A stretch of DNA of 64,000 nucleotides from Klebsormidium nitens (GCA_000708835.1 DF237087.1:104016-168015); one strand, 5' to 3'; shown: positions 11,178-62,345, counted from the first letter of the stretch. Program-made: numbers and translations. Notes: generated from the letters alone by a model not told the origin.

Positions 11178-14100
11178 ATGGCAAGAGGCCGCCCTCATGG
11201 CCGGTCCAAGTCTGACCACAGAGTTTGTCAGGCAGCCCGACATGCGCTAGCNNNNNNNNNNNNNNNNNNNNNNNNNNNNNNNNNNNNNNNNNNNNNNNNN
11301 NNNNNNNNNNNNNNNNNNNNNNNNNNNNNNNNNNNNNNNNNNNNNNNNNNNNNNNNNNNNNNNNNNNNNNNNNNNNNNNNNNNNNNNNNNNNNNNNNNNN
11401 NNNNNNNNNNNNNNNNNNNNNNNNNNNNNNNNNNNNNNNNNNNNNNNNNNNNNNNNNNNNNNNNNNNNNNNNNNNNNNNNNNNNNNNNNNNNNNNNNNNN
11501 NNNNNNNNNNNNNNNNNNNNNNNNNNNNNNNNNNNNNNNNNNNNNNNNNNNNNNNNNNNNNNNNNNNNNNNNNNNNNNNNNNNNNNNNNNNNNNNNNNNN
11601 NNNNNNNNNNNNNNNNNNNNNNNCTGCAGGAGGCGCGGATTGCGGCGGTTAACGTAGAGTGCAACGTGGAAGATGCCCCTCGTAGGCAGCGGGGCCAGAA
11701 GTCTAAGGATCTACAGACCAAGGCATCAGCTGCTCGGGTGTCAGCACAGGGCCATTCTTCCAAGGCAACTGGCAGTGGGAAAAAGAAAGTAAACAAGCGA
11801 TTGGAACATGCGCATGGCAAAGCTGCACAAAGCGGTGAGTTTCTGGTGCATGGCTTCTGGGTTGAATGCTTGGAGTTATGAGGCGGACGCAAAGCAGAAG
11901 CTGGGACGTATTGGTGTGTAAGATAGAAAGGTGAGGGGTGGGTGGCCTTGCAATGTGTACCAAGAAGAGCATGTCTGTTCTTGGTAATGGAAAGGAACGA
12001 AGTTGGTACACACTACTTTCGGTAGCGCGGTCAGAATGGTTTAAGGGTGGCTGGCTCTGCAGTTACTCATAAGATTCTGAGGAGTCTTAGCGGGCATGTT
12101 TGTCCCTGGGACGTACCAGACTTTGCCTCTTTCTCTTTAGGAATAAGAAGCTAATTCTTGGTACATACTGTCATCACAAAGTTCTAAGCAATCTTAGCGG
12201 GAATGGCCGTCCCTGGGATGTACCAGACTTTGCCTCTTTCTCTTTTGAGTATAAGAGGCTGATTCTTGGTACATGCTGGCAATTACAAACCTCCAGCCCC
12301 ACTGCCAGAAGAAAGAGGCATGACTGCAAAAGGCAGGGGCACCCACCAAGTTCTGCATTCATCTCCAAGTTTAGACTCCAGGTTCAACACCCAACCTCTG
12401 CGATTCTTCATTGCAGACTTGCATAGCCTGTACTGCAACGCGTGCGGCGCTCCCGCAGAGTTCGGGCTGCGAGGAAGCAAGGAGGGGGGAAGCGTCAAGT
12501 ACTCGTGCAGAGCGCACACCACGTCGAGTGGTTGCTTTCGAGTCGACCGAGACCGCGCAGGTGAGAGCATTCGGGGAGCCTGCTGTTGACATGGTTTAAC
12601 TTTCATACAACGTTCATAACTGCTCTCCCATTGGTGAGCAGTGAGCCTTTAGAAAAGACTGTCGAGAGCTTTACATGCTCTGTATGCTCCTGCAGCATGG
12701 GCAGAGGACCGAGAGATGCGCCGCCTGAGAGCACAGGAGAGGAGGTTGGAAGAAGAGCTGCGGAACCTGGGAGGGCCCTCCTTCACTGCAAAACCGCCAT
12801 ATGGTAAGCATGCGGCGCAATATCACCCAATCATTTGTGCTCTTATACAAAGCCGGTGGGCAGTGAGCTCACTGTCATACCTCTGGTGCATTTTGCATCT
12901 TCTGCTGTGCCTTGACCCGTTATTCAATGGTGATGGCAATCAATGGTGATGGCAACTTAACGCTTCACTGTTTACTTCTGCAGCTTCGGAAAAGTCCCAA
13001 AGTGTGGGGCCTCAGGCTTCAATGCCCATGAGCCGGTCGCTCATAGGTAAGGCGCTTCGGTTGCAGTTCTGCAACTGCAGTTCACTTGTACGGCTGTTGG
13101 GCTCGCTCTGTATTGCAAGCGCTTGTAGCAGTTAAGCTAATCCTACTTTGACGGTTTTTTAGACAGACTTGGTGCTTTTCGCTCGTGCCGTGATCAGTCC
13201 AGCTTTCAGCATCTAGCGTTCCAATATGTTGTTCCTCACGTGCAGCTGCTCTTCTCATGATGGGTGGGATAGAGATCAACCCCGGCCCTACTGCAGACAA
13301 GGTGAGCCTGGACAGTGAGAAGCAGTTCAGGCGGGACCAGCACTGGTTGTACTCGAGCACCCAGTCGGGCCTCCGCTGTGTAAGCCTTCACCTTGGTAAG
13401 CGAGTTTGTTCAGGAAGATGACCTGTGGAGGGCGCCAAATAATTGGAACCAAACACGATTCCTGGTGTCCACTCGTGCAGGAGATAGAGATGGAAGTGTG
13501 CATCTGGAGGACGCCAGACTTCAATGCGATACCAAAGGGGGAGACAGAGGGGATCCCTACAGACATCAAACTGCTGCCAGACACTGCTGCTGAAGAAGAC
13601 CAGCGCCTGCACTTGCTGAACCAGTTTGGGGAAAAGGAGAGAGTCTTTGTGTGGGGTAGGCCCCTGCGCCCTGGGGGTGAGCCTGTCTTCCGGGAAGTCG
13701 AGCGGGCAAAGGCTTTGAAAGCCCCGCCACTGATGGAGCGGCTGACCCAGCGCCCCCAGATCAAAGTTGTCTCAGGTACGCATATATAAAAATAAAGGAT
13801 TCAAGTCGTGGTGTTGTTGTTCAGCATGTAGCGGCAGGAAAGCTGGGAGAAGATGGCATGGGAAGGGACATGGCTGATTGCCGGGTAGTATAGTTGCTTC
13901 TTTGTCGATCTTGCCGAGGACACTGGTGCATGCTAGGCATGGGGTGTTTCTAGCAGAAGCGGAGTTGCTCTGGAGCAGAAAGCGGTCTGCTGTGCAATTG
14001 TTGGCAGACCAGGTGCAACTCACGAGCATTTAGGTGCTTGTCAGCCGTCACTCTTATGCACTTTTCACTTGCTGGGGTTCTCAACGATCCAACCTCATTT

Positions 14101-17100
14101 GCTGCCTCAAGCATATATGCTGCGTCACCCTGCTCATGAAGCTCTTTGTTGTTGCAGGGGCTGGTCCATCAGCAGTTGGCGAATCCAGCAGTGGGGTGCA
14201 GGTGCGGGGGGAGCAGGTGGGTGAGTGCACCTCCTCCCAAAGTGCCTTTCTTGCCACCAACCAGTGATTGTGCAAACGTGGAATGCAAGTGGGCGCTCCC
14301 TATGGGCAAGCTGTGGTGAGCCATTGGACTAATATTCCATGGCTGTGGAGGTGGGCCACATGCAGGCCCCAGTTGGAGGGGATTTGTTCCAATGAAAATT
14401 GTGGTCCGAGGGTTTCGTTCTTTGTGTGGCCTGCATGATCTTTGTCATGTCAGCGTGCTCACCTGGTTGCACGTCCAACCCAAAGCCTGTTTGGCGATAA
14501 AGTGCTGTTACCTATCTTTGCTGTCGTAGATTGCGTCTTACCTCAAGAGTTGCTCAGCTTGTTGCCAACACGACTGCAGACGTCAAGTAGGACAACAACA
14601 CCTGCATATTCTGCAGACTCGGAGGAAGAAAGTTGCTTGTAATGGTGGCCTTGTCAACCGAAGCTGAGCAGCAGGATGCTTTTCACACTCATTTGCGAGA
14701 CATGCGGTTCATGAAAATCGGTTTCATGGGACAGGTCAGAGGGAGCTGGCTTTCGTTGACCCCTCAATGTCTCTTTTACAGGCCGGAAGGAGTACATTGG
14801 AAGCAGGACGGAGGGCATCAATAACAGAAGCAAGGAAGCCTACTCCTTGAGAACCAAGACTGTAGATGCGGTCATAGATGCAATGGACGAGCAGGGGGCT
14901 ATTCTAGTCAGAGCTCCGCCTCAGAGTGGAAAGACTTCGTTGCTTCAGCTGGTTGGGGACAAGCTGACTAATATGCAAAGCAAGGTCTACTACGTCTCGT
15001 TGGGGCAGTACGATCCGGCAGAACAGGACTCGTTCGAGAGAGTGTGGGCTGAGTACAATCCTGGCACCGTCTTCAACAACATCGTTGTCACTCCGCAAAC
15101 CTCCCCAGAGTCTAACAACAAGCCGGCCCCCCCACCCCAACCTGTGTACCTCCTTGTAGACGAAGCCCAGAAGGCCTTCCCCACTCTAGGACTGGCCCTG
15201 TTCAAGAAGCTAAAGGACATCCAGAGCGGGAGGTCCAAGAGCGGTTTGCGTATTCTACTAGTCTCGTGCTGGGGCAGCAAGAGGATCAAGGCAACGACCG
15301 CCGCTGGATCCGCGTTCTCTACCCCGGGCTCTTGGGACAATCAGACTACGATAGGACTTTGGTAAGCCGCTAACTCACGCACCTGTGATGGTGCTACTTG
15401 TAAGAACACGAGAAGTGAGGCGCCTCTTTGTCTCTGGAGCATGTTTAAGCTTCCTCTTTTCCTATCATGTTTCTCATTTGAGCTTGCAGGACAAGGAGAA
15501 GTGGCAAATGAGTTTTACTTCCTCTTAGCCTCGCAGGAGAAGGTGTTGAGCTGTTTGATTGTCTGTGCCGGAACGTCTAAGCACTTGCTAGTAGCCCACA
15601 CAAGTGACGATGAAGGACTTTCTCAACACAGACGTCTTTTGATTCTGTCAGGCGAGAGCCGGAGTCGAGCGGGCTGGACATAGCGCTCCAGTTCACGTTC
15701 GACGAAGCACAGGAGTACTGGGCGGGCTGGTTAGCTGCCAATGGTTGGAGCGGGTATGCAGCGGATTCGGAGCGCAACTACCTCTTTGTCATAACTCAGC
15801 GTCAGCCTGGCGCACTCTCGCTCCTCCTGGACCGCATCAAGGACCTGGGCCTCCAACCCTCACGAGCCACTGAAACCGAGTGGCATGAGAAAGTGCGGGC
15901 TTGGCTGCTGAGCGAGAACCTCATCAAGGCGGTCGCTGACTTGCGCAGTATGAGCATGTAAGTAGCAGTCCAACAAGCAAGAGCCTGGCTTGCTACACCT
16001 ACTGCTTGGGTATCCCCCCGAGCGCCTCTTGCGTATCACAAAGTTTCCTTAGCTGTTCACCTGCCAATCATCCACTAAGGAACATCGGTTTCTACATTCA
16101 TTTTGTGTACCATCTGACACCCGCCAATTTGATCGAGTAGCTGAAGGCTCACATTCATTGAGACTCGTCCGGTGTATTCTCGCAGGTTAGCGGATGCCTT
16201 TGATCAAGGCATCACCGGTGCTGTCCCTGGGTCTGCCGATGTTCCAGCAGTTGCTGTGAAGGACCTCGTACGGAAGTTGCTGCACGGGGGTGAATTGAAG
16301 GTGATTGTGTTGCAACTGACAGGTAGTTTCCACTGTGTGGAATGCGCTTTGATGCATCAGCAGCCAGGATGCGCTTCCTGTGAAGTTTGCCGCCTGTTTC
16401 ACAATTCTACGTGTTGGTCGGCCAAGCTTGCAGATCGCTGAAGCCGCAGGATTTCGCAGAGTTTCGACAAAGATAGCATCAATCATCGTGATGCTCGTGC
16501 ACTACTCTCTGCACGAGTGAGAAAGTGGATGCACATATCCAAATGAGGTCGCTTTGTTACCAACTTCCTCGTTATGCCGATCTCAGAGTAAGTTGACTTG
16601 GCCTCTACTTCCATGCAGGTCCACTCCAGTCAGCTCGTTCGGTTTGCAGACGAGTATGATGCTGCATTGACGCTGACAAGATTAGGGCAGCTGATCCTAG
16701 AACAGGAGTTCTTCTATCTGCCCTCCATCCTCCACATGCGGTATATGACCCGCCAGTTATATCTGGGCCGTAACCAGGACGCACATGCTATTCTCGAGGC
16801 GGGCATTTTTGAGTTCGTCGTGGTAGTGGTGGAGCGGCTTGATCCTGTCCAATTGAGGAAGTCGGAGTCTCGTCATTCTGCCGAGAGCGCCCTGTATGAG
16901 CGACAGTTCCAGAACTCCTTTTATCAGTGAGTATTCCTGGCACTAGTGGTCTTCATGTTTTTGAGATTGTCGCAAGTCGTTTGCAAGGGCGACCCTTTTG
17001 CTGCATCTGAGAAGCAATCAAACCATTGCTTGTTTGCTTGCTTTTCATTAGGGCCTCAGTGCTTCTTGAGAGAAGGTAACGTACCTTTCTGCAAGTGCGA

Positions 17101-17856
17101 GAGTTTGAGAGAGTCCATGCAGATCCAGATTCTCTCTAGCCCTGATGGATCAATGAGTGTCTCATCAAGCATCCTTGCGGTGTTTGTCGACACGGAGCTC
17201 CATGTTTCTGCAGGGCCGCTATGAGCTACCTACCCCACGATGCGATTCTCTCACCTGATGTCGGGTACCTATATGGAGCCGAAGGCTACCTTGATTTCTT
17301 GCTGGGGCACCCGTTTGCATGGGGATTTGAACTTCTACGAGAAGGTGATAGGCGGCGGGAGCACCTGGCAAGGTAAGTGGCGTGCAGTATGGGCTGTCTG
17401 ATGCACTTGACTTGGTTTTAAGTATAATTTGTTTCGTTTGACGGTGTCTTTGTCGAAGCTGTCCAGATTTCATCACTGCAATTCGCCAGAGAAGACTTCT
17501 TGCCATGAGAGTCCTACTCATTGAGAACGTCTCTGAAGACACATGTTCTGATCAACACTAGCCTTTTGTTTGAGCCATGTGTGTGATTAATCTACAAGTT
17601 GCTTGTCTGGATAGTAATTTGAGCTCAAGCGAGTTGTATGGTTCGCAGGTTTGCTTCTGGAGGGAAGTACTTTCCACTCCTCAATGCCAACGCCGTTAAG
17701 CAATGGGTAGTGTTGGATTTCTGCTGGAAGAGAGGCGCTTTTCCTCCAGAGATCCCACACGGCTTTGTGCACGTTTCATTTTCGGACAACTTCACACAAG
17801 CTGTTGTAACAGCTAGCGACAAGCAGAAGATCGTTGAGTTGAGAGGCCTTAGATAA
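11178..17856 (+). CDS. Header gene A: header + Zn knuckle + 2A-like motif + Crinkler-type P-loop NTPase + REase-fold nuclease (first exon crosses an N gap)
   Basis: Phase-compatible exon chain after the gap: ..-11834, 12417-12560, 12696-12803, 12984-13046, 13246-13301/13379, 13481-13775, 14158-14220, 14782-15361, 15652-15957, 16186-16300, 16619-16926, 17214-17372, 17649-17856. Walker A RAPPQSGKTS, Walker B LLVDEAQ. C-terminus ERQFQNSFYQ..SPDVG..EGYLDF..WGFELLREG..GGKY..VLDF. Confidence 0.75.
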
Positions 17857-19934
17857 GTTTCGCTGATTTACATTGACTTCCGAAACTAAGAACGATCATA
17901 TGCCGCAAGGTCACTTGCCAGCATTTTCTTTGCATAAAAGCCATCCGTGGCAAGAGGATGTAGGAAGCTGCCCGATTGGGGATTTAAGCAGCCGACGGCC
18001 TCCAATTGGGACTTTGTTTGTGTGCCTTTGCAATACAGAGATCATGCATGCTTGTTCATGTTGCGAAGCTATCAAGGTTGCAAGCTTTGGTTGCAAAAAT
18101 GAAGCTGCGGGCTTAAAGCTGCATATTTTATGCATGGCCAGTTTAAGCCGGACACATACAAACCCGGAACGATCCGGCAAGAGTATTAGCCTACTTGAAG
18201 GGCGCCAGATCAGCCTCCAGGACCGTAAGGCACACATTTTTTTGTGGCACTGCATTGGAGTCAGAAGCCCTATCCATTGATGTAGGTTGCCTTACCTATC
18301 AAACACCAACCTAGAAACAAACCGCTATTTTGATTCTTTGTGAGTACCCGGAAAGGCAAGGAATCACCACAAGGATAACTGCTTACTGCATATGTTATAT
18401 CGGTACAGCTTCTCCCGATCAACCTGCTAGTTTTACTGTCATCTAATCTAGACTAATTTCACTCACAAACAGACTGACTAAGTTACACTATATTTTTCAC
18501 TAAAACTAGCAGGTTGCTCGGAACTATAGCTGTATGTATCCGTTCTCTCCAAAAAGAACAGACCGTACTCGTACTTCATCGCGAATGTTCTCAAATGCAG
18601 CGCGGTAAACGCGTAGTCGAGCGGGTTTTGGGTCAGTTTGGGGCTGTGGCTGTCCAGCCATTACCAAAGACTAAGTTCCGGTTCGACTGTACACTGTTAC
18701 CAGTGTGATAAGTGCAAACCGTAGGCTCTAGTTGCTCCGGCCTTGAGGCACGGTGGCACTTTTCATTATTCAGTCTTCAGTACCAGCTCGCAAATGGCCA
18801 CCAGCAGCCCCGGCACCTAGCTTTGGTGCCGCTTACGGCACCGTGCTGATGGTACTCAGCTCGCAATGGCACCTTTTGGTGCATTCATGGCACCCTGCAG
18901 CTGCCATCCACTTGGCTTTCTCTGCTTCTATGCTGACTCAATTGGCCAGGGACTTGAGTCAGCTGGCTTGCATGGAGCTTGACTCACCTGGCTTGGAGCT
19001 TCATTCAGCTAGTCTGGAGCATTTCTGCAAAGTTGCTAAACAGTGTATCTCCATACGTCCTCACGCTGTTAAGGGAAGAGAGGCTGCCCTCATCAGCCAG
19101 GGATTTATGGTGTGCAACCTTGTTTCAAATGCAAGTAAGTCTAATTCCGTAACGGCTGAGTTTGGGGACTAGCCTGAGTCGCTTGATCTTCATGGTACGG
19201 GTGCTCAACGAAATGTCACAGTCAATGCAGAGGGTTGAAGTTCAACAACAGCACTTGGTGAGTAGCATAGTGCTGCCGGCTGGAAAGCCGCACGATGCAG
19301 GGAAAAGAGTAATTTCCGTGAAACTTAGCAAAGTTCAGGCTTTCAAGCATCATTGCCTCCATTTTGGGGGACGCAGATCTCAGGGTTTTGTGCACTCTGT
19401 GGGTGTCAGAAGGGAGCAAAAGATTAGGGATAGCTGGTCCACATGAAGGCTCGTTCAAGCACGTGGTTTTGCATGAGGGCGCAGGTCAATACGCGCAAAG
19501 TTGAGCATCAAAAAGGCTATGTTGCTGCGTATTAGATCATGTGTGTCTTGGGGTCAGAAAAGCTGTTGTCTCTACATACTTGGGCAATATACAATGATGA
19601 TAAGCTGCGAGTCAGTTGTTGGGGACCCAATAGATCAAGTCAAAGATTGGGGGGTTTGAGCTGCCTAATTGCTGCTCAAGGCAGTGCACTCATTTAGATT
19701 TGGGCACCTCAGTTTTCTGGTCTCAGGTCGTTGGCAATCTCCTGAAGTGTCCCTCACAAAGACTGTCTGGATTTAAGGGTTATGATGTCAAATGCTTGAA
19801 GGACTTACATAGACATGGAGAATGGTTGAAAGACAGTAGCGTCAGATTCTTTGCATCAGTGATTGAACACAGTTCTTAAATTGAGTTTACTTTTTTCTTC
19901 ACTTCTTTGTGCTGCAGTTGGGTTCTCTTGGAAC

Positions 19935-22900
19935 ATGGCGAGGACTCGCCCCCCCGGAAGGACCAAGTCTGATCACTGGGTTCGTCAGGCGGCACGACAT
20001 GCGTGCCCCGCAGACGACAGAGACTGCATTACAATCAGCGCCGAGAAGCAGGAGGCTCTCATCGCTGCTGTCAACACGCGAGGCGAGGCTGAACCTACCC
20101 TGTGCCACCGGCGGCGCCAGGAGTTCGAGGGGGTGCAAGCTGCTTGTGGATCCTCGCCATTCCGTCCTGAGGGCGAGCCCATGCTGGGACATGCTCAAGT
20201 AGCTTCCAAGCGGCCCTCCCTCGAGGTGAGCGAGCTTTGACAGCTTCCGTGTTACGAGCTTTTGCTCGGTTTCTCCAAACTTCCTTGGGCTGCGGCCACC
20301 GGGCCAGAAAAGGAGCGGGCCGCCACAAAAGCTAGAGCCAGGCAACAACTGCAACAACTGGTCGCTTTGAGTCTGGTCTAAGTCAAGCCCCCCAAACAGG
20401 CCGAGTTGCATTGTGAAACAAATACGCAGTAAGTGACTGCCAGAGCCTCGAGCAGGTGATCTGCTTGGTTTAGGAAGCATTGAGTATAGAAAAGCCAATG
20501 CAAATTGACTGGCAGCCGCACCGGCATGTTTCTCCCGCAGCATCTTGCTCTTGTAACTGACAGCAGCGGCCAGATTATTTGCTTGGTTTGGGAGCTTCAA
20601 AAGTATAGAAGAGTTGGTGCAAATTGACTGCGGACATGCCCGCCAGTTTCAGACTTGATTCGGAACCATGTTTGTGAGGTCGATGATCACGGTACCTTCT
20701 TCTAACGCGAGGCTTCGATGCAGGACCCATCGCTCGACGCGTGTGCTGCTCAGGGCGTCAGTCCTACGCACTCCCCCCAAGCTGCCCTCGACAACTCGCA
20801 GGACGATGCCTTTAGCTTCTCTACAATCCGGGCGCTCGTGAGAGCCGCGCTGACCGGATCGCCGAATGATTCGAAGAGGGGCCAGCGCGTCTTTCGGAAG
20901 CATGCAGGAACGGTGTGCCGTCGCGCTCGGGAGGAGGCTGGCCCTGCCGGCCTTCTGTGGTCGAGAGCCGCTTGGGAGGGCAGCTTGCATGCAGCGAAGA
21001 CCGGCCTCGAGTGGCTGGCAGAAACGTCGGAAGTCGTTCTGCTGGACGGTTTCAAGGAGGTGCTGGCTGCGACAAAGAGGGCTCACCTTGAGGGGCTCGA
21101 GCAGCCAGCAAGTGCGTCCAGCAGGCCTAGGCATGCGGCAAGAGAGAAGACGGCTGGCATGGCTCGCTCCCCAGCTGGCAATCCTAGAAAGAGAGCGGCT
21201 CAGCGCTCTGCACGTTCACTTGGCAAACCCGCAGACCAAGGTGAGGAGAGCAGCCGATCTGCGAACTTGTCCTTCGTTCAGCTTTTGATTCTCTTCGTTC
21301 AAACCAAGTCTTGAAGTCTGGTCTGGAGAGCAGATGATGCTAGAATGCAGTAACCGGCTGTTTGCATGATCAGTCCTTGTGTCCTGGCGTCTGCTGGAAT
21401 TAGAGTCTGGACTAGCAAGAGTTATTGATGGCAGGTGCTTTGGCTTGACTTGGTGCGCTGGACGTTCCAAAGTGTCGAGCTTCGTAGCTTTTCTGGTGCC
21501 GCTGTGAGCCCCGCGTGCCCCAGTCTATTTGCCTGGCTTAGAAGCTCTAGAGTATAGAAGGCCAGGGCATATTGTCTTGCACCATGCCGCGTGTTTCCGG
21601 ACTTCCCGCTTTCAACTGATGGCGTGGACCAGTTTATTTGCCTGGCTTGGAAGCTCTGAAGTATAGATAAGCCAGTGCAAATTGTCTTGTAACTGATGGC
21701 GTGGACCACTTTATTTGCCTGGCTTGGAGACTCTAAGTATAGACAAGCCAGTGCATATTGTCTTGTAACTGAGTACGTTCGCATATTCCCCATTTGGAGT
21801 GCAGCCCATTGTTGGTACCAGTGTCGTTCTGTAGAATCAATCAAGGCCTTCTATTTAGTGAGTTACTCGACTGCCTCTAGCCTCTAACCCCACCGTTTGT
21901 GTTCTTCAGATGATCTGCATACTCTTCAATGTAACAAGTGTGGCGCCACTGCGGAGTTTGCTCTTCGGGGCAGCAAGGAAGGGGGGCAAGTCAAGTACTT
22001 TTGCGCAGAGCATGGCGGTTCCAACGGCTGTTTCCGCGTTGACAGGGACCGTGCAGGTAAGACCTGGCACGCACGGCTCAAGCATTTGGATCCTCTTCAT
22101 TGCGACGCAAGGCAGTGAAGTCTGCTGCAAAATTTGTCGCACTGTCCACAAACCCCCATATGACCCTTGAAAGTGATTGCGTCCCTGCCCTTGCAGCTTG
22201 GGCGCAGAACCAGGCTGATCTGCGCAAGTTGAGGGCAGAAGTAGCCAGGCTCGGAAAAGAGCTACGGCAAATGGGAGGGGGATCGCCCGCCCCTGAACAT
22301 ACCTGCAGCCAGTCAGGTGAGTGCACACTGGTCTTTCAGGCGGACGAGGCAGACTTGCATCAGTAGTATGCATCCTGGTGAACCGTCTCAGTGAATTGCA
22401 TCAGTTATTGGCGTAAGTGCATGAGTTGATGCGCCAACTGCATCATCAGTAAGTCGCACCACTGAACCGCATCACTTGCATCAGTCTCCATAAACTCCGT
22501 CAGTTGCCTGCATCAGCCATCAGCACTCTGAATCTGCACAGTAGCGCTGCATCAGTGCTTCTGCAAAGGGCTCCGTTTGAGAACATATTCGCCATGTCTC
22601 GTTTGATTCATTCTTCTGGATCAGGTGTCTAGCTCGGGTGCTGGCCATATGTCTCGTGTATTGCAGTCCATATGTCTCGTCTGTTGCAGATCTTTCCCGA
22701 TGTTGCACGCCTGCACGGTGTTCAAGTCTGATTGCTCCTCTCTTTTGCAGCATGCCACGAGCCCTGGCAAAGTGAACCGTACTGGGATACGTCGCCCAAA
22801 CCCAGATGCCTCTTAGGTGAGGCGCATTTCTCGCATCCCTAGCTCTGTCAAGTCGCATGCTGCAAATTCACTCTTCTTTGCCCTTCTCCGATTGTGATCC

Positions 22901-33670: not shown

Positions 33671-33755
33671 TTGAGAGTCGTGCAATTGTGCGCTGTGAGT
33701 TTGATCTGCGCAGCAATTGATTTTCCAGCCGTATTGTCAATAGAAGACTCTCAGC

Positions 33756-34268: not shown

Positions 34269-34309
34269 ACCATGCAGCTTTCGAATTTGCTGTTGTACTG
34301 TTAAGATGC

Positions 34310-45167: not shown

Positions 45168-45254
45168 CGAAATAAAGATGTGAGTTGGGCGCGTAACGTC
45201 TCCCTAAGTACGTGAAACTCGGAGGCAGGCCGAACACAGCAAAGTGAAGGCACC

Positions 45255-47300: not shown

Positions 47301-47439
47301 CCAGTTGGCGCGACCTTGCATTCCCACCCAACCCAGCCCGGTCAGTCTACCGGGCACCCGGGAAGAGGCCGCTTGTAGCATAGGCTATGTGCCACATTGT
47401 ACCTGGCGTGCCGTTACCGCATCACATTGGACCGTTCCC
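47301..47439 (+). promoter_or_regulatory. Conserved non-coding module upstream of header gene C
   Basis: 38 bp are identical to 10678-10715, and the downstream boxes are shared. Confidence 0.7.
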
Positions 47440-47631
47440 GATCACATTGAAGGCCGGCAAGCTGTGCACAGTTGGAAGTCGCATTCTAACAGACAGACGC
47501 AGGCGTTTGCTTTAAAATAGATCTGCTTCAGGGTCCTGCGACTCTGCTTCAGCTCGACTCTGAGCAATCCTCCATTCCTTGCTTCTGTGTCCTCGCAGCC
47601 GTCATCAGTAGATGTAAGTGCTTGATAGACA

Positions 47632-50600: not shown

Positions 50601-53600
50601 TCTGCCGATGTGGAGATGCAGGATGCTGACACAAGTAACCAGAGTCGTGAGTTTTGCCGATCATCTTCTGTGGCGTTGCGGCGCGGCATGTATTTGTTGA
50701 GTGCTTGTTGAGGTTGTTTGTAGCTTGCTCAGTGCTCATGATTACCAACACCGCAAAGCAGAGTCGGATTGACTGTCGATGGCCTTAGTCGAAGACAATT
50801 GAGGTCAAACCAAACCTCGAACCGGCACTTCTGTTGTCAGAAAGGTGACAGGCTCGAAAGGTGGACATACCTTTTCCCCCTACTTGCCGCCTTGCTTTCC
50901 GGCACCTGACGAACTAACCATGGAGGGGTTAAGCAAGCTAGCAACAACCGCATACCTGCCTCTTGTCCGCCTTGAATTTCTTAGTGATGTGATTGCGTTC
51001 CGCCTTCGCCTAGTAGTGACGCTGCCCACAAGCCGCTGCATTCTCAAGCTATGCTTCTATTTTGGCTAAGTTTGTGCGAGTGCCTCTATGCAGGTGCACG
51101 GAGTGACATCCTGGCGTTGGAGAAGTCGGTGGCTGTCTCAACACATCTGGAGGTCAGTGAACTCTGCCAAAATTCTCTCTTACGTCAATCGCACGCAAGA
51201 GCTGGAAGGGCCTCCTCCCTCATGCCTTCAATTGAATCTCAAGTTCCAGTCACTTCTACAGTAGTGTCCCTGTTTCCTGCTTGCTGGTGTAATAGAAGAG
51301 AGTTTGCTGCGTTACTGTGCGAGTCCTGACAGCTTTGAAGGTGCTTGTGCGGGGTTCTGCACCTCTTCGGGCATAGAACGGTAACTTGCGGAGTGCATTC
51401 TATTGCAGCCGACCTCTGGAGATCGGACGTGGGAGGAGGAGAGCATGCTGTCCAAGAAGCGCAAGCAGGCCAGTCCGCACTTTGTAGGTCAGTCATCAAG
51501 CCCGCGGTTGAATTTACAATGAGAGCGTCTATTTTGAGGATAGAACACGCAAGGCCAAGAACGACAGAGCTCTAAGTCTATCAAAGGACGGCAGAGTCAG
51601 AGACGATTTTGTGGAATTGTTGAGCTTTGCTTTATCGTTCTGAACGCAGTTCTTCAGAGGAAGAAGAGGCTGACGCTGGAAGGCGGCTTGTACGTAGAAA
51701 TTACGCTCCGCCTACAGTTCCTCGTCGCACTTCACTTGGGCGAGCTTCAGAGGATGCTCTCATCTATGCACATCTCTCGCAACCTCTTGTGTTTGATACA
51801 GTGGTGCATTCATCAGAAGGACAAGTCTTCGATGCATGGGTCGTCCTTTGCTGCTGCTTGTTGATTCCTGACAAACTCTCTTCTCTCCAGCTGAGCGGCT
51901 CTCAGAGCTCTTTGGAGGTCTCTACGACAAGGATGTTGGTCGAAGGATGGAAGAACTGACAAACAATCGAGTTGGCAGAATCCAACCAGGGGCCAACGGA
52001 CTGGTGGAAAACATTGGGAGCCGCTTCAAGCTGGCGGGCTATAACGAGTTCCTGGTTGACCTTTTAAAGTGAGCTCGCCATCTAAACCTTTGAAACGGCA
52101 CGTGCCAGGTCTCTGCCTTATCTCCTCATTCAGCTGACGCCAAGTAGGTCTACCGAGCTGACTTACTGTAAAAGTGCTATACTGATTGGAGAATTTGGAG
52201 AGTCTTCTGCCAAGTGTCCGCACTTAGTGGTGCACCTGTGTGGGGACAGTTCGCCAGCAGATTCTCGGGATCTGGAAGGTTTGAAACTTGTGCTTGTCCA
52301 GCATCTCAGTATTCTACTTCGGCCAAGGAGGTAGGGTTGGAAACAGTGGTTGTCAAGAGCTCCAAAGGGTGATAGCGGCTCTTGATACCTCCTATCTGTT
52401 TTGCAGCACAATTGCTGCCCTGGTTGAGCGGCTTGACAGCAACGAGGTGGCGCCTCAAGAGAAGATTGAGAGTGCTCTGCATCTCGGACGGATCATTGCC
52501 GGCCCTGGCCTGGGGAAGTCGACCGTGCTTCAAGAAAGCTGGATCCACCTCCATAAGCTAGTGACGAGTCTCTCCGAAGAGGACAAGAGGAGGGTTTTCG
52601 AGAAGAATCCACGACTGTTGAAAGCGCTGCACACGTGCCTCAGCCGTGAGAGGATGCTGGTGTTCAATCTGTCCTTCCAGAACCCAGGTGCGGTTCCCCT
52701 TGCGTCAACTTTACACCTGTCTTGATCAAAAGTACGCTGATCTGACACTGCTCACTCTCCAAGAGCCAACTTACTTCGCTTCCAACGGAAGTTGCTGTTC
52801 TTACACCACGGCGCTCCAAAGCATATGTCCTCCTTAGCTCTGTCTGGTCTCGAAAAGTTTCAATCCATCTTTCACGCTAAAACTCTTGGTCTGACAAACC
52901 TACAGAGCAGCCGAAGCACGTTGTTTGCATCAGCCCTGTAGGCAGGGTCATGCCGATGTGTAGTGAAGGGGCCCAATGGAGTCAGGGAGATCTGCTTTGG
53001 CGATGCGTCAGAAAAAGAGTCTGACCCTCTGGATCAACGTGCTCCATCTCTCATCTGCAGATCAAGGGAAGTATCACCCGTTCGAGCAAAAGCTCCGAGA
53101 GAGAGACCAGGATTGGGACAGAGTGCTAGCCCTGCGCCTGCTGCACGCCTGCCTAGCGAAAGCGGGGGGAGGGGGGAAGCGAGGCACGGAAGAAGAAGGG
53201 GGGGGAGAAGAGTCGATCAGGGACTACGAGCGGTTCTGGGAGACCTTCATGGAGCAGGAGGAGGACCTGCTTGAGAAACTCAGCTCGATGAAGGTGCTCG
53301 ACTTCATCAGAAGGAGGGCCAATTTGGCTGATGACCAGCACGCTCTCATCGTGTTCACCTTCGATGAGCTGGAGGCCATCAATCACACCCCAAAAACCAA
53401 AAACGACGCCACTATCGGCCAGCACCTTATGTCGGCTTTCGCCCGCCTGCGACAGAGACTCCATACCCTGCAGTGTAGGCAGGGCACGCATGGGCGAACG
53501 TTTGCCATCAGCCTCGCTGCGAGTACAAGGGCATCAGCAACGACTCTCAGGTGTTGCACGTACCTCTCTGTCACTTCGCTCATCAAGTGGCCTGTGTGAT

Positions 53601-56398
53601 GCATGTGCATTTGATGGCACCCGCGAAAAACGTGCTCTTCTTCGCACATGTAGGCTCGCACAAGGACCGAACGAGTTGGAAATGAATCAGCTCTCTCTCC
53701 TGCACCTCGATCGAAAGTGTGGATCGCCTGGTGGGTCAAATGCTACTGAGTGCATTTTCTGCCTCCTTTTGCTGAATGGATGCTCACTCTAACCTCTATT
53801 CCTCTCTCCAGTTTGACTGCATCCGAGAAAGCCGGCATCCTGGACCTGCACGTTCCCATCCAGACCTACTTGAGTCTCAAGTCCATTTCTCTAGACCTGT
53901 TCCGGCGGAGCAACATCCCCATTCACAAGGGCAACATGTCGGCGACCTTCAAGGCCTGTCTCCGTTTCTTGGGGGGTGTTCCGCGGACGTTGGATCGTCT
54001 GTTAGTGGCACTGTCGGGTGGAGACGCAAACGAGTCTATCAGGAAACTCGACTTGGGTGCGATTCTGTACCTCTGTAATACTCTTGCTCCCAAGCCAATT
54101 TTTTGCGTATACAACCACTCTTCTTAGCACGTCCGTTGGGCTGGCCAGATCTTAGATTGTGCGAGGTATAAGCTGAACCTGTTGCCAATGCATATATGTA
54201 GTCTCTACTGCCCTGGTTGCTGGTTCTGGATCCAGGATTCTCGTGGAAACCTCTTCTGTCTGTCCACGTGAGTCTCTAGCAAGCAATAAAGCCGATGTCA
54301 AGTGGAGACAGTTGTAAAGGAGGTGGGCCCACTTACTCTCTCGGTTCTTCTGATCTGTAAAGATCCTGGCCACTTGCTCCGCAGCTTGAAAGCTGCTGAT
54401 CAGATTGTCTTCCTCCTCTCAGGGAAACTGCGAGAAGTTCTGCAGGCCAACATCAACCCCAAATTGGCGCTGCGTGAGGTGCTGGACGCTTATCAAGACG
54501 ACACGAACATGCGGCGCTGGAAGGAAGATCCAGTGAAACGCGAGATGATGGAGAGCATGCTTGCGCATGGGTTGACGGGGGAGACGGTGTTCAGAGACGC
54601 CTTTGTGGACAGCAAGGAGAAGATCACTTGGCAAATGCTGGAGAGCGACGGCTTCATCCACCTCGGGATCGAGAAGAAAGAGCCCCAAAGTGAGCAATTC
54701 TGGTTGCGTGGGGGGCTGAGAAGTGAAGGAAGGCGAACTATTGGTGTGTGAGCACCTGCTGAGTACAAGTTGAGGCGTCTGCTTCGAAGCACATTAGTCT
54801 GGGCAGCATTTTGAGCAGGGGTGCGCCTGCTCACAGTTCTTACCTAATGAGCAATCTCAATGCAGCAGACGCATCGAGCTGGACCGTCCGATAGGACTAT
54901 GATTCGTCTGGAATATGAGGGTTCATGTCTCAGCATCGTTTCCACATATCAGGACGTTGCCTGCTGGTCTTTCCTTGTTAATCGCATGCCCTGTGACTTG
55001 CTAACAACCTCGCTTTCTCCTGGGTATGCTTAGCTGGAGTCTGCTTTGCTTTGAAGTGAATGGGACATCTCTTAATGCGGGTGTCTTTTTGCAGCTCAGG
55101 AAGGTCGGCGAGACTCGGCTGGGTCAGTCGACCTCACGCCAAGGGAGTCCGATGCAGCAGGAGGAGAAGGAGCAAGCGGCCAGGCAGTGCTAGTAGGTGG
55201 CGATCCAGCGGCGGCTGGAATCCACAAATCGAGGAGCCAAGGAAAGGAGCAAGGAAGGGCAGGAGGTCCGCGGGCAAGAGCGCAGGAGAAAGATGGGGGG
55301 TGGGAGAGCGGAGAAGGAGCTCCATCCGTCAAACCGCGCGCACAAGACAGGGACAGAGTGAACGAAGGAGCAGTCAGCGAAGCTGTTGACGATGACGATG
55401 CTGAGGCCCACGGGAATGACCCAGTCAGTCGCTACAGGAGGATAGTATCTTTGCTTAGTGGCAAGCAGAAGCGTCGTGCAAAGACGCAGCAGAGGTACTC
55501 TGTTCAGGTTTGCCCCATCATCTTCTTTGCGGGGGCAGACTATCATCCTATGACCCGGCAGATGTGGCTCCCCATCTTCCACGCATTGGACATCGAGTGG
55601 CGCAACAGGGAGGAGACGGACCTCCAGATTCCGATGCTGAAGCTGTACGTGTACAAGAAGTTCTTCCACAGGAGCACAGTGCAGCTTCGACAGCTGTTCC
55701 CTGGTCTGCCGGAAGATTTGGCAAGGGTGAGAATAGTGGTTCCAAATGGCGGGTGGGAGCGAAGGAAGGACCAGAGAAAATATGACAAGGAAGACATGCT
55801 CAGGCTGAAGTCTGAAGCGACCCTCGAGAGAAATTGGGCCCACCTCGGGCCTGGAAACTACGGTTGGGATGGGGTGTATTTCTTCTTCCGTGCATCGGAG
55901 GAAGAGGAGGCAGAGGAAGAAAGCGCAGAATTTGCGCCAGAGGAAGCAGGAGAGGAGAGCCTGGAGCTTGTGGCAGAGGCGGGGGCCGTTGAGAGGTCAT
56001 CATCACAAGCGGGGGGCACCGGCGGTCGTGCAAGGGAACGCGAAAGCGGGACAGGAAGTAGGGAAGCTGAAGCCCTAAAATTCCAGACGAGAGTGCAATC
56101 GAAGAAGAGGGTCAGGAATCCGACAGGTTCAGCAGAGGAAGACTCAATGGTTTGGGCTCCCCAGAAGGTGAAAGCCAGCACGATCAACTGGGAGATGGAC
56201 GCGGAGCAAGAGAAACAGGGCAGGTCAGATTTGATTGTGTATGTGACGGACCACCGCCTTGATTCGGACCGCAGCGAGCTCTCGGAGAACATCACTGTTG
56301 TAGATGCAGCCCTCATTCCGCTGTACTACGGCCCATTTTTTTACATGAAAGATGCTTTAGACGCGGCATTCCATGGGGCAAACCGCCGCTACGAGTAG
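47632..56398 (+). CDS. Header gene C: header + Zn knuckle + 2A-like motif + second type of Crinkler NTPase + REase-fold nuclease
   Basis: Phase-compatible chain (some boundaries approximate): 47632-47989, 48431-48574, 48692-48811, 49261-49314, 49520-49575, 49732-49927, 51094-51152, 51409-51487, 51891-52068, 52302-52687, 53061-53550, 53654-53715, 53812-54055, 54423-54689, 55095-56398. Walker A AGPGLGKS, Walker B FTFDELE, GGVPRTL, WQMLESDG, NYGWDG, VQSKK, LYYGPF. Confidence 0.7.
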
Positions 56399-57539: not shown

Positions 57540-60500
57540 ATGGCAAGGTCTGGCAAGTTTGGCACCCTGCGGCGGATCTTGAACTCGCTTGGTATGCTGC
57601 CAAATGTCCTTCTACGCAAGGAGATGCTTCTCTGAGTCAGCAGGGAGTCAGCATCTGATGACTTGGCACAGTTGGTGGCAGCACCCAATGGCGGCCCCTG
57701 GCGGCCTTTGGATGCTTTTTGAGCTCGTTTTGATGGGGTGCAATGGTCTCCACCTTCATTTCTCGAAAGAACAAAGGGTCACTTTCTGGAGGGAGCTCTC
57801 TGGCGAGCTCAGAAGCTGGCAGCCTGTGGTCAGCGCATCGTGCACGCAGACGTCGGGACATGCTCAGGTAAGAGCAATTTGCCTTTCATTTATCTTGGCA
57901 ATCCTGAGGGCCTGTGCTGTGTGCTTCGAGTGCATTCTTCCAAGTGTTTGTGCTCTTGCAAAAAGGGGCCTTGTTTGCGGTGAAAGCAGTGCACGTTGAC
58001 GCATGGCGAGGTCTGCCTGACAGGTGTTATCAACATGAACGTGCAATTGTGCTGCCATTTAGCAACATGTAATTATCTTGGCAATCCAACAATACATCTT
58101 GCATGCATGCATGTCTGTGCATATTGCTTCATTATCTTGGTGCAGGCTGTTTGCTTTGCGACAGCAGAGCGTGTGGGCATCGGCGCTGCGCACCAGGTTT
58201 CAAGGTGAGCCCTCGTGCCCAGCCTTTTACGCTTCTTCAGCTGGCTGACCTGCACACCTGCAGGCTTGCAGGATTGTGCTTACAAAGTGGGACTGATCTC
58301 GGCTGATGGCCTACATCAATCCTCACCTGAGATCAATTGCTCGCCAATGCGTCATTGAACTGCGAGGGATCCCTCTGAGTATTGTCTGGTCATATCTTGC
58401 AGCAGATGGCAGAGACGACCACACCACAGCAGCAGGAGGCGGCAACCTCGCCGTTTGCTGGCAAGAAAGGCACCCCTGCTGCTGAATTGCTTCCTTCCAC
58501 TATGGTGAGCCCACCAAGCCCGGAGGCTCAGATTCTGCTGTGTGGGAGGAGCGTAGAGTCAATTTCTGAGATATGGCATGGATCAAGGAAGCGATACGTG
58601 CTGTACGTGCGGGGTGCTGACAAATTGCATTGGTTGAGAAGCTTCATTGCATAGACAAGTGGGTGCAAATTGTCAGCCCCATGCCAGGCACTCTTTCCGG
58701 GTTTACTGGGAGCGTTAGAGCGAGGTTCTGACAATCTGCATTGACCTAGAAGGTTGAAGTGTATAGACCTGCTGGTGCAGATTGTCAGCCCCATGCCGGG
58801 CACTTTTCTGGTGCTCAGTGCTTGATGGAGCGAGGTTCTGACAATCTGCATTGGCTTAGAGACTTCAAATGTATAAACCAGCTGGTGCAAATTGTCAGGC
58901 CCATGCCGGGCGCTTTCCTCGTTTCTTCTGAAGTTCATGTAGTGAGGATCTTACAATTTGCATTGGCTTAGAGACTTCAAATGTAAAGACCAGCTGGTGC
59001 AAATCGTCAGGCCCATGCATGGCACTTTTCTTGGCCGCCATTCACCCAGCTTGCTTTCCTTCTGGTGACATGAATGTTCGCTGCACTGAGGCACTCTATT
59101 TCCCTGCAGGGCACATCTGGCGCATCCTGCAATGATGCTGTCCCGCCGTTACCCATCAGAGCGCTCGTGGCGAGCGCGTCCAGAGGCTTCCTCACCAACT
59201 CCAAGAGAGGCCACCGCATCTCTCGGAAGGTGGCGGGGGCCGTGTGCCAGCGCGCTCGAGAGGAGCTCGGTTCTAAAGGCCTTCTCTGGTCAAAGGCCGC
59301 CTGGGATGGGAGCCTGCATGCCGCGATGGCTGGTCTCAAAGAGCTCGCGGGGACTTCGGACGCGGGCCTGCAACAGGGCTTTGAAAAGGTGTTGATGTCG
59401 ACCAGGCAGGCCCATCTGGAGGGGCTGCAGCGATCAGCAAGCGCCTCCCATGGAGCTCGCAGAACTACCGCGAGCCCAGCGCCTGCGCGCCCAGCAGCCA
59501 CAAACAATGCCCGGCCCCCACCTGGCGGCGCATCCAAGAAAGCCAGGAAGGCGAGGGAGCAGCTGGCCAGCTACCTATTTGCGGACAAGGGTGAGAGCAG
59601 CACCTTGATTGAGCAGGCTTGCTCGATGTACCTGGTCAGGCCTTTGCAGGAAGAATTCAGTTCTTTGCGGGACTTACTGCTTCATGGTCAGGAAGTATGC
59701 AATTATGTACAGGTATGAAGACAGGACTTCGTATAGGACTTTGCTTCTATGTTTATGGCCAAGGATGCCAAAGAAGGCGAGCCTCTACGCCCACATGTGA
59801 TTCACAGGTGTTCCAACTCTGATCCCAAGTCTTCATGCTTTCCTTGCAGTTCCACACAGTCTCCTCTGCGAAGAGTGCAGCTTTCCCGCAACCTTTGCGG
59901 TGCGCGGGGGCAAAGAAGCGGGCAACCTCAAGTACTTTTGCGGTGTGCATCGCCTGTTCAAACCTGGTTGCTTCAAGATTGAGACGGCCCGAGCAGGTGA
60001 GTTCTATGCTGCGTTGTGCCGGCGCGCCATAGCCTCCATAGTTTGTCCTCTGCACAGATTACTCGTCCTAGAGCTGTGCTAGTCCAAGCATGCGAACATG
60101 CGAGTTTGCAAGTGCACATAATGGCTATCGTCCACAAGCCTGGACCTGTTCTGCATGTGAGCGCTTATCACTTGAAAAACATGTTTTTCGTGCCCGTTTT
60201 CAGAGTGGGCACGTGACTGCGAAGTGTACAAGTTAAAGGAAGAGCTGGCGCGGGCGCTTGACGAGGAGGCGCGTCTCAAGGACAGTCGGGGTGAGGGTTT
60301 GTAAGCCTTTGGACAGTGCTGTTGAAGAAATGTGCCTCTTACTTTCACAATCCTTGATTCGGTCCTGCTTGGATTTTGCGGCCAGTGCAACTACGGAAAG
60401 ACTGGCAGGCTCTCCTCTATGCTGCCTCCCGTTGACCCTGAGAATGCTCGGAAAGCTCGAAATCATTTGAGCTCGTTGCTGAGTCTGCGAGTTCTCTGTG

Positions 60501-62345
60501 TGTCATGCTCGGTTCAAACACCTTCTCTCTTCTCCACAGGTTGCACCGATTGGCAGCAAAACGAACGCTGGTGGGATCCAACTCCTAAAAGCAGAGACCT
60601 CATTGGTAAGTCCAACTCTAGACGAGTCAATTCTGGTCTCATTCTGACGGACACGAGGTCAAGCCTGGGCACCAAGTCTAGCGCGTGCCTGGTCATTCAT
60701 TTAAGAGTGACCAAGGCAGGTCCTTGTTCTGCTTAACCTGGTAGCAGGACACTCAATTGGAGACCGCTCCAACGTGTTCAATCGCGAAAAATCTCGGTGA
60801 AAGCTGCCTGCTCCTGCTTAGCCGCTCTCCTTTGATGGTCATGTGTCCAGGGGTTTATGGACGTCGGAAGTATTCTGTCCGTTGCCCTTTTGCAGAAAAG
60901 CTCTTGATTATCGGCGGGGTCGAGAGCAATCCGGGATTCCCACCAACCGAAGGGGACCGTCCCCTAGCATCAGGAGGGGACATGCCAGTGGATGACGTTG
61001 GCGCGGCAGGAGTAGTCGCTCAGCCATCTCTCCACGATGTGAGCAAGCACCCGTACGGGAGTGTTTCAGAGTGATTGTTGTTGCTGGATCAGGGCCCAGA
61101 CAAATTGCACTGGCTTGAAGAAGTGTTTGTATAGAACCTGAGGTGCAGATTGACGGCACCGCTGGGGTAGTGTTTTCGAACCCATTTTTGTTGATGACTT
61201 AGGGCCAGGCATTTTGCATTGGTTTGAAAAAGTTGCTGTGTAGATTGACGGCGCCCGTCCAGTAGTGTTTTTAGAGCAGTCTTGCTGATTGATTTGGGTC
61301 CAAACGATTTGCACTTACTTGAAGAAGTGACTGAATTAATCATGAGGTGCAAATTGTCAGCCTACGCATTTCGCACTCCCCCCCCCTCTAAGTCACGTTG
61401 ATTCCGATGTGGTGCGCAGAATGATTGCCCTTAGCCCACGTAAATTGACTGCCAATAATGCTGTATCTTGTTTTAGCCAGGCTAAATCATGGGCGAGGTC
61501 GGTGTTCGACAGACTGCGTGTGCATCATTTCTGCAGGCAAGAGGCGACCGTGAGGTTTTGCAACATGCCAGCGAGGACCAGTTGCAAGGCTCGGCATCCG
61601 ATGTCGGCACGAAGAGGCTGCCAGAGCAGGTTAGAGCCCCCACTGCATTTGGTGTACTTCCCTCCACCATTTTGAGGCTTTCCTCAGCCGCGCTTCTTGA
61701 CCAGGCTGCCAAATTCTGGTCGTTGCTTCAGATAAGCTAGGCAGCACGTGACCGCTTGATTGCATCAGCCGGCTTACTGGAGAGAATCCGGTGTGCAGGT
61801 GCCATCAGGAGCAGCAGAAGCGTCGAGAAGGAGGAAGAGGGGAAGACTCGTCAAGCTCTCCGAACTTGCCAGCAGAGCCCCTACAGACCTTGCTGCAGGC
61901 AACGTGATCGAACCGGCTACTGGCGCTCGCACAGAGTAAGCACCTGTGCCACGCGCATTGCATATCAGCTAGAGCATCAGTCCCATGTAAATCGCTATGA
62001 TGATTTGTGCCCGTCACAGAGAGACTGCTGCAGCGATTGTGTTGTGCAGTTCTACGAATCAAGAGCCCATCAAGCCATAAGCCACTTCTAATCTTGCTCT
62101 CCTTCCCCTCGATATCCAGGGAAGCAGGAGAGCTGAAGGAAGACCTCAGTGAAACGTCCGAGCGGACTGCAGGCAACGGGCGCAGGGCCAGGAAGGAGCG
62201 GGCGGTTGCCGCGTTTTTTGCAGGTTGCGAACAGCGGAGAACTGTATGGGCTGCCAGAGAGGAGGAGGAGTTTGGTCCGCCCTCTCCAACGGCGCAAGAC
62301 GATTCTGCTACAGACATGCCAGATCTGGAGGCCTCGGAAACGTGA
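57540..62345 (+). CDS. Header gene D, closest paralogue of B, possibly degenerate; 3' extent uncertain
   Basis: Exons 58403-58504, 59110-59590, 59850-59996, 60204-60290, 60540-60605, 60896-61038, 61537-61629, 61799-61936, 62121-62345. The RALV..SKRG.R..RAREE.G..GLLWS.AAW.GSLHAA exon is shared with B. The motif reads GGVESNPGF. The first exon appears frameshifted. Confidence 0.55.
58605..59035 (+). repeat. Hairpin-unit repeat array x4 (intron of D)
   Basis: CTGACAATCTGCA..TGCAGATTGTCAG units. Confidence 0.9.
61085..61345 (+). repeat. Degenerate hairpin-unit array (intron of D)
   Basis: CAAATTGCAC..GTGCAGATTG units. Confidence 0.7.

Follow-up and report, generated by a model that had tools for sequence, protein, structure and literature searches.

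A 64,000-nucleotide stretch of the Klebsormidium nitens genome (GCA_000708835.1 DF237087.1:104016-168015, hereafter the window) carries four paralogous genes, A to D, all on the plus strand, in which a common series of leader exons ends in a motif resembling viral 2A (StopGo) peptides and is followed by payloads of different kinds. K. nitens is a charophyte (streptophyte) green alga. With moderate confidence we read these genes as part of a resident, spliced, expressed and Klebsormidium-specific shuffled family, in which leader and enzyme lie on one mRNA and are probably separated co-translationally in the copies that carry NPGP. The original prediction, made from the window alone, of a constant leader and 2A motif ahead of unrelated enzymatic payloads proved to be true genome-wide.

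A six-frame scan located exactly four 2A-like motifs, all on the plus strand, at 13266 (A), 22996 (B), 49540 (C) and 60916 (D). The motifs of A, B and C fit the tested StopGo consensus LLxxGG(V/I)ExNPGP and that of D reads NPGF (peptides in Table 1). Upstream of the motif, all four genes have the same order of exons with canonical AG/GT borders, namely a zinc (Zn) exon, a coiled-coil exon, a small exon ending in P(M/K)S(R/K)xLI and, on an exon to itself, the 2A motif. As had been noticed, phase-1 introns interrupt the leader at matching places in A–D; the Zn, coiled-coil and small exons are symmetric (1-1), and the 2A exon is entered in phase 1 and left in phase 0. The Zn exons matched one another in blastp with E values of 1e-11 to 1e-25, far above chance, and together with the exon borders and the motif scan this bears out the four paralogues with a common exon series. 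Nucleotide identity among A–D was 70–77 % and confined to exons, and the paralogy is old. A fifth Zn-like frame (18047-18187) was dropped, having 21 % identity only and no ligand pattern. Rfam and tRNA scans of the window gave nothing.

Genes A, B and C start with MARxRPxGxxKSDH (at 11178, 19935 and 47632), as had been noticed; D starts with another helical domain of ~160 amino acids (aa), termed N2, and has no MAR exon. N2 is also present in B, as an extra in-frame exon between the MAR and Zn exons (20724-21240, 48 % identity to D 59113-59590). Since N2 opens D and sits as an additional exon in B, the leader is itself modular. It comprises 170–430 aa before the 2A motif and contains a basic helix, a Zn site and a coiled coil, the last being a helix in the AlphaFold2 (AF2) model of the paralogue P0001. 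The exon earlier called a Zn knuckle does measure 144–147 nucleotides (nt), but it is not a CCHC knuckle: its ligand spacing, CxxC-x20-CxxH-x5-C, is a Zn-ribbon-like pattern and differs from the retroviral-type spacing CX2CX4HX4C. The last G of the exon end that had been read as DRDRAG/ETARAG comes from read-through into the intron GT.

A profile built from the four Zn exons gave 26 matches among 1.84 billion representative proteins. All 20 of those looked up were Klebsormidium or Klebsormidium-like (16 K. nitens models, three proteins from one JGI metagenome and one from a Logan assembly). Leader-based searches added further K. nitens models and Trinity open reading frames (ORFs) of Klebsormidium subtile, and nothing significant was found outside Klebsormidium in either type of search. 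In all, ~30 K. nitens loci were seen, a count that takes in A, B and D of the window and one further gene in locus L007. With at least three payload classes among them, the multiple leader copies with diverse payloads that the original prediction envisaged do exist. A metagenome pattern scan with the Zn profile picked up two loci, both rejected as spurious archaeal-type Zn-fingers.

The payload classes comprise a P-loop NTPase (extended by a Crinkler-type nuclease end in A, with the P-loop only in C), an AEP-like primase with a UL9-type helicase, and a Prim-Pol with a D5-type helicase. The third, in which leader and 2A lead into a Prim-Pol and a D5/SF3 helicase, lies outside the window (P0037, P0038 and contig L003). 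The entire A payload could be aligned with K. nitens and K. subtile paralogues, and one of its exons encodes a P-loop NTPase (Pfam AAA_22, 29.5 bits). An A-type payload (P0011) gave a full-length alignment with a Rhizophagus 'Crinkler effector protein' (E 1.5e-6), and the Glomus Crinkler protein was matched at 89 % coverage (E 2e-4); these fungal proteins carry the PF20147 header. The label CRN NTPase-REase is supported for A because this payload type aligns full-length with glomeromycete Crinkler effectors. A PDB sequence search with the A-type payload returned nothing significant.

For B, which had been assigned an AEP primase and a UL9 helicase, the helicase was confirmed by PF02399 (61.3 bits against a gathering cut-off of 20, E 6.6e-17), and it was the sole family piece recognised by PHROGs, where it matched replication families. 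The AEP identity of the 400-aa frame is plausible. Three AEP-like blocks (DxD, sxH and D..Y..R..sK) were seen in its alignment to P0035, and PrimPol was among the top Foldseek matches of a low-confidence model (pLDDT 47); the sequence match to human PrimPol was weak (E 0.47), Pfam gave no match, and hhalign against Prim-Pol profiles was negative, the profiles being too shallow. The linker of B, from the 2A exon to the primase frame, is poorly conserved, which makes alignments to P0035 and P0022, and any exon chain drawn from them, unreliable in this part.

The C payload, originally labelled a second CRN type (a putative identity), has a P-loop with Walker A (GPGLGKST) and Walker B (FDELE) motifs. 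Further relation to the A type was not detectable, hhalign having matched the two at the P-loop only. It had no match in Pfam, PADLOC or PDB, and PADLOC gave none for nine family proteins. Gene D does not end in a short disordered tail at 62345, as had been thought: the stop there is bypassed by a donor at 62341 (followed by gt), in line with the splicing of the homologous model P0021, and further exons reach to 63736 and beyond the window. On contig L002 of a related species, which is syntenic through the C–D intergenic region (~75 % nucleotide identity), the D orthologue extends through a primase-like frame to a UL9 helicase, an arrangement colinear with the payload of B.

Homology had been described as stopping shortly after NPGP. 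Conservation of the motif does collapse directly after the G/P junction, but two modules recur behind it across the family. One is a W-rich domain of ~70 aa found in at least nine NTPase-class members, C included, and modelled by AF2 as five helices (pLDDT ~85), with the SAM-like LEAFY oligomerisation domain as the best PDB match (prob 0.94, E 0.54); the other is an acidic linker, EDIEGxEF..EETSQDR, in the primase/helicase classes. A conserved non-coding block was found 320–500 nt upstream of the ATG in four NTPase-class members (A, C, KFL_005970030 and KFL_001970180), in which ~40 nt are identical, their coding exons being only 50–75 % alike. The block, which closes on a possible GT donor and includes an upstream ATG, was not present upstream of B or of the primase/helicase-class genes examined, and may be a shared exon of the 5' untranslated region or a cis-regulatory element.

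A two-gene unit on one strand was also observed, in which a leader-2A-NTPase(-nuclease) gene is directly followed by a leader-2A-primase/UL9-helicase gene. This tandem NTPase-type/UL9-type pair is represented by A–B, by C–D (via the orthologue on L002) and by KFL_005970030 and its neighbour (10001-16454 and 18115-26454 in L007).

The leader phylogeny is at odds with payload type. In the leader tree, C, with its NTPase payload, grouped with P0007/8/33 of the UL9 class (support 100/99), and the payloads of P0002 and P0033 are 55 % identical, yet their leaders fall into different clades. Related contigs also carry different partners at syntenic positions. Contig L003 holds an orthologue of the B upstream region and MAR exon joined to a Zn-to-Prim-Pol gene, which in K. 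nitens is located on another scaffold (KFL_006270020) and has no MAR or N2 exon; this junction could represent either an intron 1 rearrangement between species or a chimeric metagenome contig. The conflict between leader tree and payloads and the swaps between related contigs therefore support exon shuffling, which had been proposed from the window and agrees with the phase 1-1 exons, and the sequence comparisons as a whole support a family specific to Klebsormidium and built in this way. Gene B also contains an internal duplication: the segment 20193-20631, made up of the final ~30 nt of exon 1 and the start of intron 1, is a ~70 % copy of 23098-23501, the end of the 2A exon and its intron, with an identical donor (CTCGAG followed by GTGAGCGAGC) in both copies. 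This duplication looks like a recombination footprint.

The strongest alternative is that these genes descend from a selfish element (a large transposon or an endogenous virus-like replicon), either as its remnants or through domestication, with the leader and 2A as its polyprotein-processing device and the NTPase-nuclease and primase-helicase genes as its integration and replication modules. This is a possible, though not a probable, account; it concerns origin and role and is compatible with an active StopGo motif. The payloads include hallmarks of selfish replicons (Herpes_ori_bp helicase, Prim-Pol with D5/SF3 helicase, AEP-like primase), NTPase and REase modules derive from transposons (review PMC5289972), and natural cellular 2A peptides are best known from retrotransposons (PMC3708506). 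A selfish-DNA origin fits because of this payload repertoire and the recurrent NTPase/UL9 tandem pair. Many primase/helicase-class members are, moreover, partial or located on scaffolds of 5–25 kb, and both the B payload and a 940-aa Prim-Pol ORF of the window are missing from the recorded gene calls. Against this, the copies are old and diverged (clusters at 90 % are single-member except that of P0027, with four members), they have many canonical introns at conserved positions, and scans of the window and family revealed no terminal repeats, integrase, transposase, reverse transcriptase or capsid gene. They also hold syntenic positions in a related species; the A–B and C–D intergenic regions are syntenic in a related environmental genome (~70–80 % nucleotide identity), and this synteny argues against current mobility of the copies.

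The preferred reading, of a leader separated from its enzyme at the 2A motif, depends on the conservation of that motif, for which 35 family sequences were compared (the D orthologue provides an additional variant sequence, the 12th). Twenty-four fit the expanded StopGo core (D/G/C/N)(V/I)ExNPGP that has been defined experimentally (PMC12846837). The LL cluster and the Gly before the core are necessary according to deep mutational scanning (bioRxiv 10.64898/2026.09.24.754024); in the family L(-5) is invariant, L(-6) is present in 31 and G(-2) in 34 of the 35 sequences, and the spacing of the LL cluster is that of T2A. Information was maximal (4.1–4.3 bits) at L(-5), G(-2), E, N, P and G and did not exceed 2 bits directly after the G/P junction. 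Between genomic copies the codons of the invariant residues vary synonymously, with two to four in use, and selection therefore acts on the peptide (purifying selection).

Leader, 2A motif and payload form one ORF in C (GenBank model KFL_001380230), and the 'complete' Trinity ORFs of K. subtile (818–911 aa) hold leader, NPGP and a payload of the NTPase class, in agreement with the original view of leader and payload as one gene. In these, and in the homology-guided model of A, the frame continues past the 2A motif, into a downstream product that would start from Pro. The exons on either side of the 2A exon are in matching phase in A, B, C, D, L007 and L008, the 2A exon is free of stops with its donor 8–50 codons past NPGP, and the order from leader to payload is the same on independent contigs. 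P0027 tracks the Zn, coiled-coil, small, 2A and post-2A exons of KFL_001970180 at 92–100 % identity, the KFL_001970180 model ending early because the scaffold ends. One-ORF continuity was in this way demonstrated for the NTPase class.

The leader consists of a MAR exon and/or N2, a Zn-ribbon-like exon, a coiled coil, a W..P(M/K)S(R/K)xLI exon and a class-A, T2A-like StopGo exon. Behind it stands one of several unrelated DNA enzymes, namely a STAND/AAA-type NTPase, either alone or joined to a Crinkler-type nuclease end, an AEP-like primase with a UL9-type helicase, or a Prim-Pol with a D5/SF3 helicase. In copies with (G/C)(V/I)ExNPGP the ribosome would most likely skip the Gly–Pro bond, and one mRNA would yield a free leader ending in NPG, probably nucleic-acid-binding, and a separate payload starting with Pro, an outcome like that of a eukaryotic two-gene operon of fixed order. 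Where the motif reads NPG(W/F/L) or TPGP, leader and payload would remain one protein, or the copy would be decaying.

Several observations weigh against separation of leader and enzyme, the Gly–Pro break being predicted from the motif itself. Eleven of the 35 copies (P0007-9, P0019, P0022, P0026, P0033, P0039, P0006, window D and P0010) lack the final Pro, which is replaced by W in eight, by F in two (one of them D) and by L in one. Apart from the changed residue, the motif has stayed conserved in these NPG(W/F/L) copies and in the TPGP copy, and it could have another role. W occurs in at least two leader subtypes, and W or F is two base changes from a Pro codon, L being the only one of the substitutes that is one change away. 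Since the literature indicates that NPGP tolerates no substitution, such changes having abolished activity in tested 2A peptides (bioRxiv 10.64898/2026.09.24.754024), all of these copies are predicted to be inactive. The leader, furthermore, matched no Pfam family at threshold (Zn-ribbon matches were sub-threshold only), and as it belongs to no recognisable family its function is a guess. Regarding continuity, the Trinity isoforms are mosaics with identical blocks in common, in which exon 1 mismatches the locus of the later exons; P0040 is a payload-only transcript ORF that starts at a conserved linker Met; the primase/helicase classes are joined to the leader only in ab initio GenBank models (P0002, P0033, P0035, P0037-39 and the 1833-aa model in L007); and the recorded gene calls hold no model for the payload region of B.

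The Pro-less copies are central to an alternative that we consider unlikely, in which NPG is conserved as a linker or for structural reasons rather than as an active StopGo peptide and every copy makes one multidomain protein. About one-third of the copies do keep LLxIGG(V/I)ExNPG but have exchanged the obligatory Pro for W, F or L, and the repeated appearance of W across leader subtypes by two base changes also speaks for it. However, the block fits a 13-residue, experimentally defined consensus, spacing included, and conservation ends exactly at the G/P junction. All variants but one belong to the primase/helicase or disordered classes, and in the D lineage two species have different disabling changes (NPGF in K. 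nitens and TPGP in the orthologue on L002), a pattern that resembles the decay of a site that had been active. It is very improbable that two separate neighbouring genes, one for the leader and one for the payload, were misjoined by gene predictors and Trinity, for although the mosaic isoforms, the payload-only ORF P0040 and the short leader-only models P0001 and P0043 fit such an artefact, P0043 is truncated by a scaffold end, and phases that match across a stop-free 2A exon, a donor 8–50 codons downstream and a leader-to-payload order repeated on independent contigs all argue for continuity.

Recent work regards StopGo peptides as rare in cellular genes, and no natural use was found in plant viruses (PMC12846837). 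With viral class-A 2A peptides (T2A/F2A) the family shares the core (G/C)(V/I)ExNPGP, an LL cluster at T2A spacing and a Gly before the core, and in both the motif is internal to a long ORF with helicase or NTPase proteins downstream; the Klebsormidium motif, in contrast, is found in spliced nuclear genes, on its own 56-nt exon and in ~30 copies, one-third of them without Pro, and is known from sequence alone. The sea-urchin NLR genes (PMC4981915) are also a cellular multigene family with 2A-like motifs, in part of the family only, upstream of STAND/NACHT-type NTPases. There the 2A stands at the very N-terminus and also serves as a signal peptide, whereas in Klebsormidium a structured leader of 170–430 aa precedes it, and primases and helicases are found among the payloads as well. 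Non-LTR retrotransposons (PMC3708506) likewise have a non-viral 2A between a nucleic-acid-binding N-terminal part (coiled coil, Zn) and an enzyme, but the Klebsormidium genes are many-introned (12–15 introns) and syntenic between species, and no reverse transcriptase or APE endonuclease domain was found in any domain scan of the window or family proteins.

Crinkler/CR effectors (Zhang et al. 2016, per PMC5289972) follow the same logic of a constant header and variable enzymatic C-termini, and the A-type payload is homologous to the NTPase and REase C-terminus of the Rhizophagus and Glomus proteins. In Klebsormidium, a free-living alga, however, the header is unrelated and is parted from the payload by a 2A motif, and replication enzymes are among the payloads; the Crinkler Ubl header (PF20147, LxLFLAK) had no Pfam match in the leader or post-2A pieces, and the post-2A domain is modelled as all-helical. 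Variable C-termini, a trait of polymorphic toxin systems, are present, and no candidate for a cognate immunity gene was identified. Catalogues of eukaryotic 2A peptides have scanned UniProt-scale data and describe the typical 2A as near the protein start, with no N-terminal domain (PMC12338488; PMC13405545). The main texts of these catalogues mention no Klebsormidium family and no leader/payload architecture, their supplements being where K. nitens proteins may be listed, and no paper in the library searched names Klebsormidium together with NPGP or a 2A-like motif.

Table 1. Features of the leader-2A-payload genes and associated elements (positions in the window unless a locus is named)
Feature	Position	Strand	Remarks
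Conserved non-coding block upstream of A	10678..10895	+	Ends at GT; upstream ATG inside
A exon 1 (MAR/basic)	11178..11834	+	Spliced alignment to P0031, P0001; contains assembly gap 11252-11623
A Zn-ribbon-like exon	12417..12560	+	144 nt, phase 1-1, AG/GT, CxxC..CxxH..C
A coiled-coil exon	12696..12803	+	108 nt; helix in AF2 model of P0001
A small exon	12984..13046	+	63 nt; ends ..SMPMSRSLI
A 2A exon	13246..13301	+	LLMMGGIEINPGP; 56 nt, phase 1 to 0
A first post-2A exon	13481..13775	+	93 % identity to K. subtile transcript ORF P0031 residues 231-329
A payload, P-loop NTPase and Crinkler-type nuclease end	14782..17853	+	Spliced alignment to P0040, P0031
A payload exons	14782-15361, 15652-15957, 16186-16300, 16619-16926, 17214-17372, 17649-17850	+	
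B exon 1 (MAR)	19935..20225	+	Ends ..PSLE/gt, phase 0
B N2 helical-domain exon	20724..21240	+	In frame with exon 1 and Zn exon; counterpart D 59101-59604
B Zn exon	21910..22056	+	147 nt
B coiled-coil exon	22197..22316	+	120 nt
B small exon	22751..22816	+	66 nt
B 2A exon	22976..23130	+	LLMIGGVESNPGP ... PSLE/gt
B payload, AEP/PrimPol-like 400-aa open frame	27933..29132	+	Three AEP-like motifs in alignment to P0035
B payload, UL9-type (Herpes_ori_bp) SF2 helicase piece	29741..30709	+	Pfam PF02399
Conserved non-coding block upstream of C	47301..47440	+	
C, KFL_001380230 (P0034, 1303 aa)	47632-56398	+	Exact threading, 15 GT-AG exons
C exon 1	47632..47989	+	Exact threading of GenBank protein P0034
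C Zn exon	48431..48574	+	144 nt
C coiled-coil exon	48692..48811	+	120 nt
C small exon	49261..49314	+	54 nt
C 2A exon	49520..49575	+	LLNIGGVEPNPGP; 56 nt
C post-2A W-rich all-helical domain	49732..49927	+	SAM-like in model
C payload, P-loop NTPase of unclassified type and long C-terminal region	50566..56398	+	9 exons
D exon 1 (N2 domain)	59074..59590	+	Spliced alignment to P0021, P0006
D Zn exon	59850..59996	+	147 nt
D coiled-coil exon	60204..60290	+	87 nt
D small exon	60540..60605	+	66 nt
D 2A-like exon, NPGF	60896..61011	+	LLIIGGVESNPGF; predicted inactive
D downstream exons	61498..63736, then off window	+	Homology-guided splicing to P0021
Conserved non-coding block elsewhere	L007 ~9410-9710; L008 ~9400-9700		
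~110-nt repeat clusters	20448-20650, 21511-21772, 23336-23521, 25824-26134, 29391-29588, 33370-33674, 45242-45617, 46195-46343, 58609-59031		

Two assembly gaps interrupt the window. Gap 1 lies within exon 1 of A, where residues 1-25 of P0001 align to 11178-11252 and residues 39-106 to 11627-11830, the gap hiding ~13 codons in this alignment. If the exon is continuous, as exon 1 is in B and C, the stated gap length (372 N) is wrong because the flanks would then be in different frames. Gap 2 (45621-46194) lies in an intergenic array of the ~110-nt repeat and touches no family exon; tandem clusters of this repeat are scattered in family introns and intergenic DNA (Table 1).

Directly after gene A is an open frame (17867-18277, plus strand) with a weak RING-like match (E 5.7e-4). 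The 940-aa ORF is an intronless frame at 37211-40030 on the plus strand that encodes Prim-Pol and DUF5906/D5-like helicase domains, is not preceded by a leader and is located within a stretch of lower G+C content (~47–50 %) at 33–40 kb; an exact look-up found no record of it. It is followed by an annotated gene of 1331 aa (40304-45158, minus strand), with two long frames and no Pfam, PHROG or PDB match. At the other end of the window, HEAT/PBS-lyase repeat exons (5141-5413 and 6637-6960, plus strand) belong to an ordinary host gene resembling deoxyhypusine hydroxylase.

For the family as a whole, a role in genetic conflict or in the handling of selfish DNA may be suggested; the idea of the leader as 'expression control', and any toxin role, are speculation. 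A bolder proposal, to which we give little credence, is that of a native StopGo 'operon' system in which the released leader is partner, regulator or antidote of the DNA enzyme shuffled in behind it, the tandem NTPase-nuclease/primase-helicase pair is a module for conflict or defence with its origin in selfish DNA, and NPG(W/F) represents a deliberately fused state. If skipping does occur, this family of ~30 genes in a streptophyte alga would be among the largest natural cellular uses of 2A, with the 2A on its own exon. It would offer native 2A peptides from the plant lineage, and these, with the natural Pro-to-W/F/L variants among them, would be a ready-made test set. The joining of one leader to Crinkler-type nucleases and to viral-type replication enzymes is a clear instance of exon shuffling and bears on how genes of conflict systems and selfish DNA are domesticated in eukaryotes.

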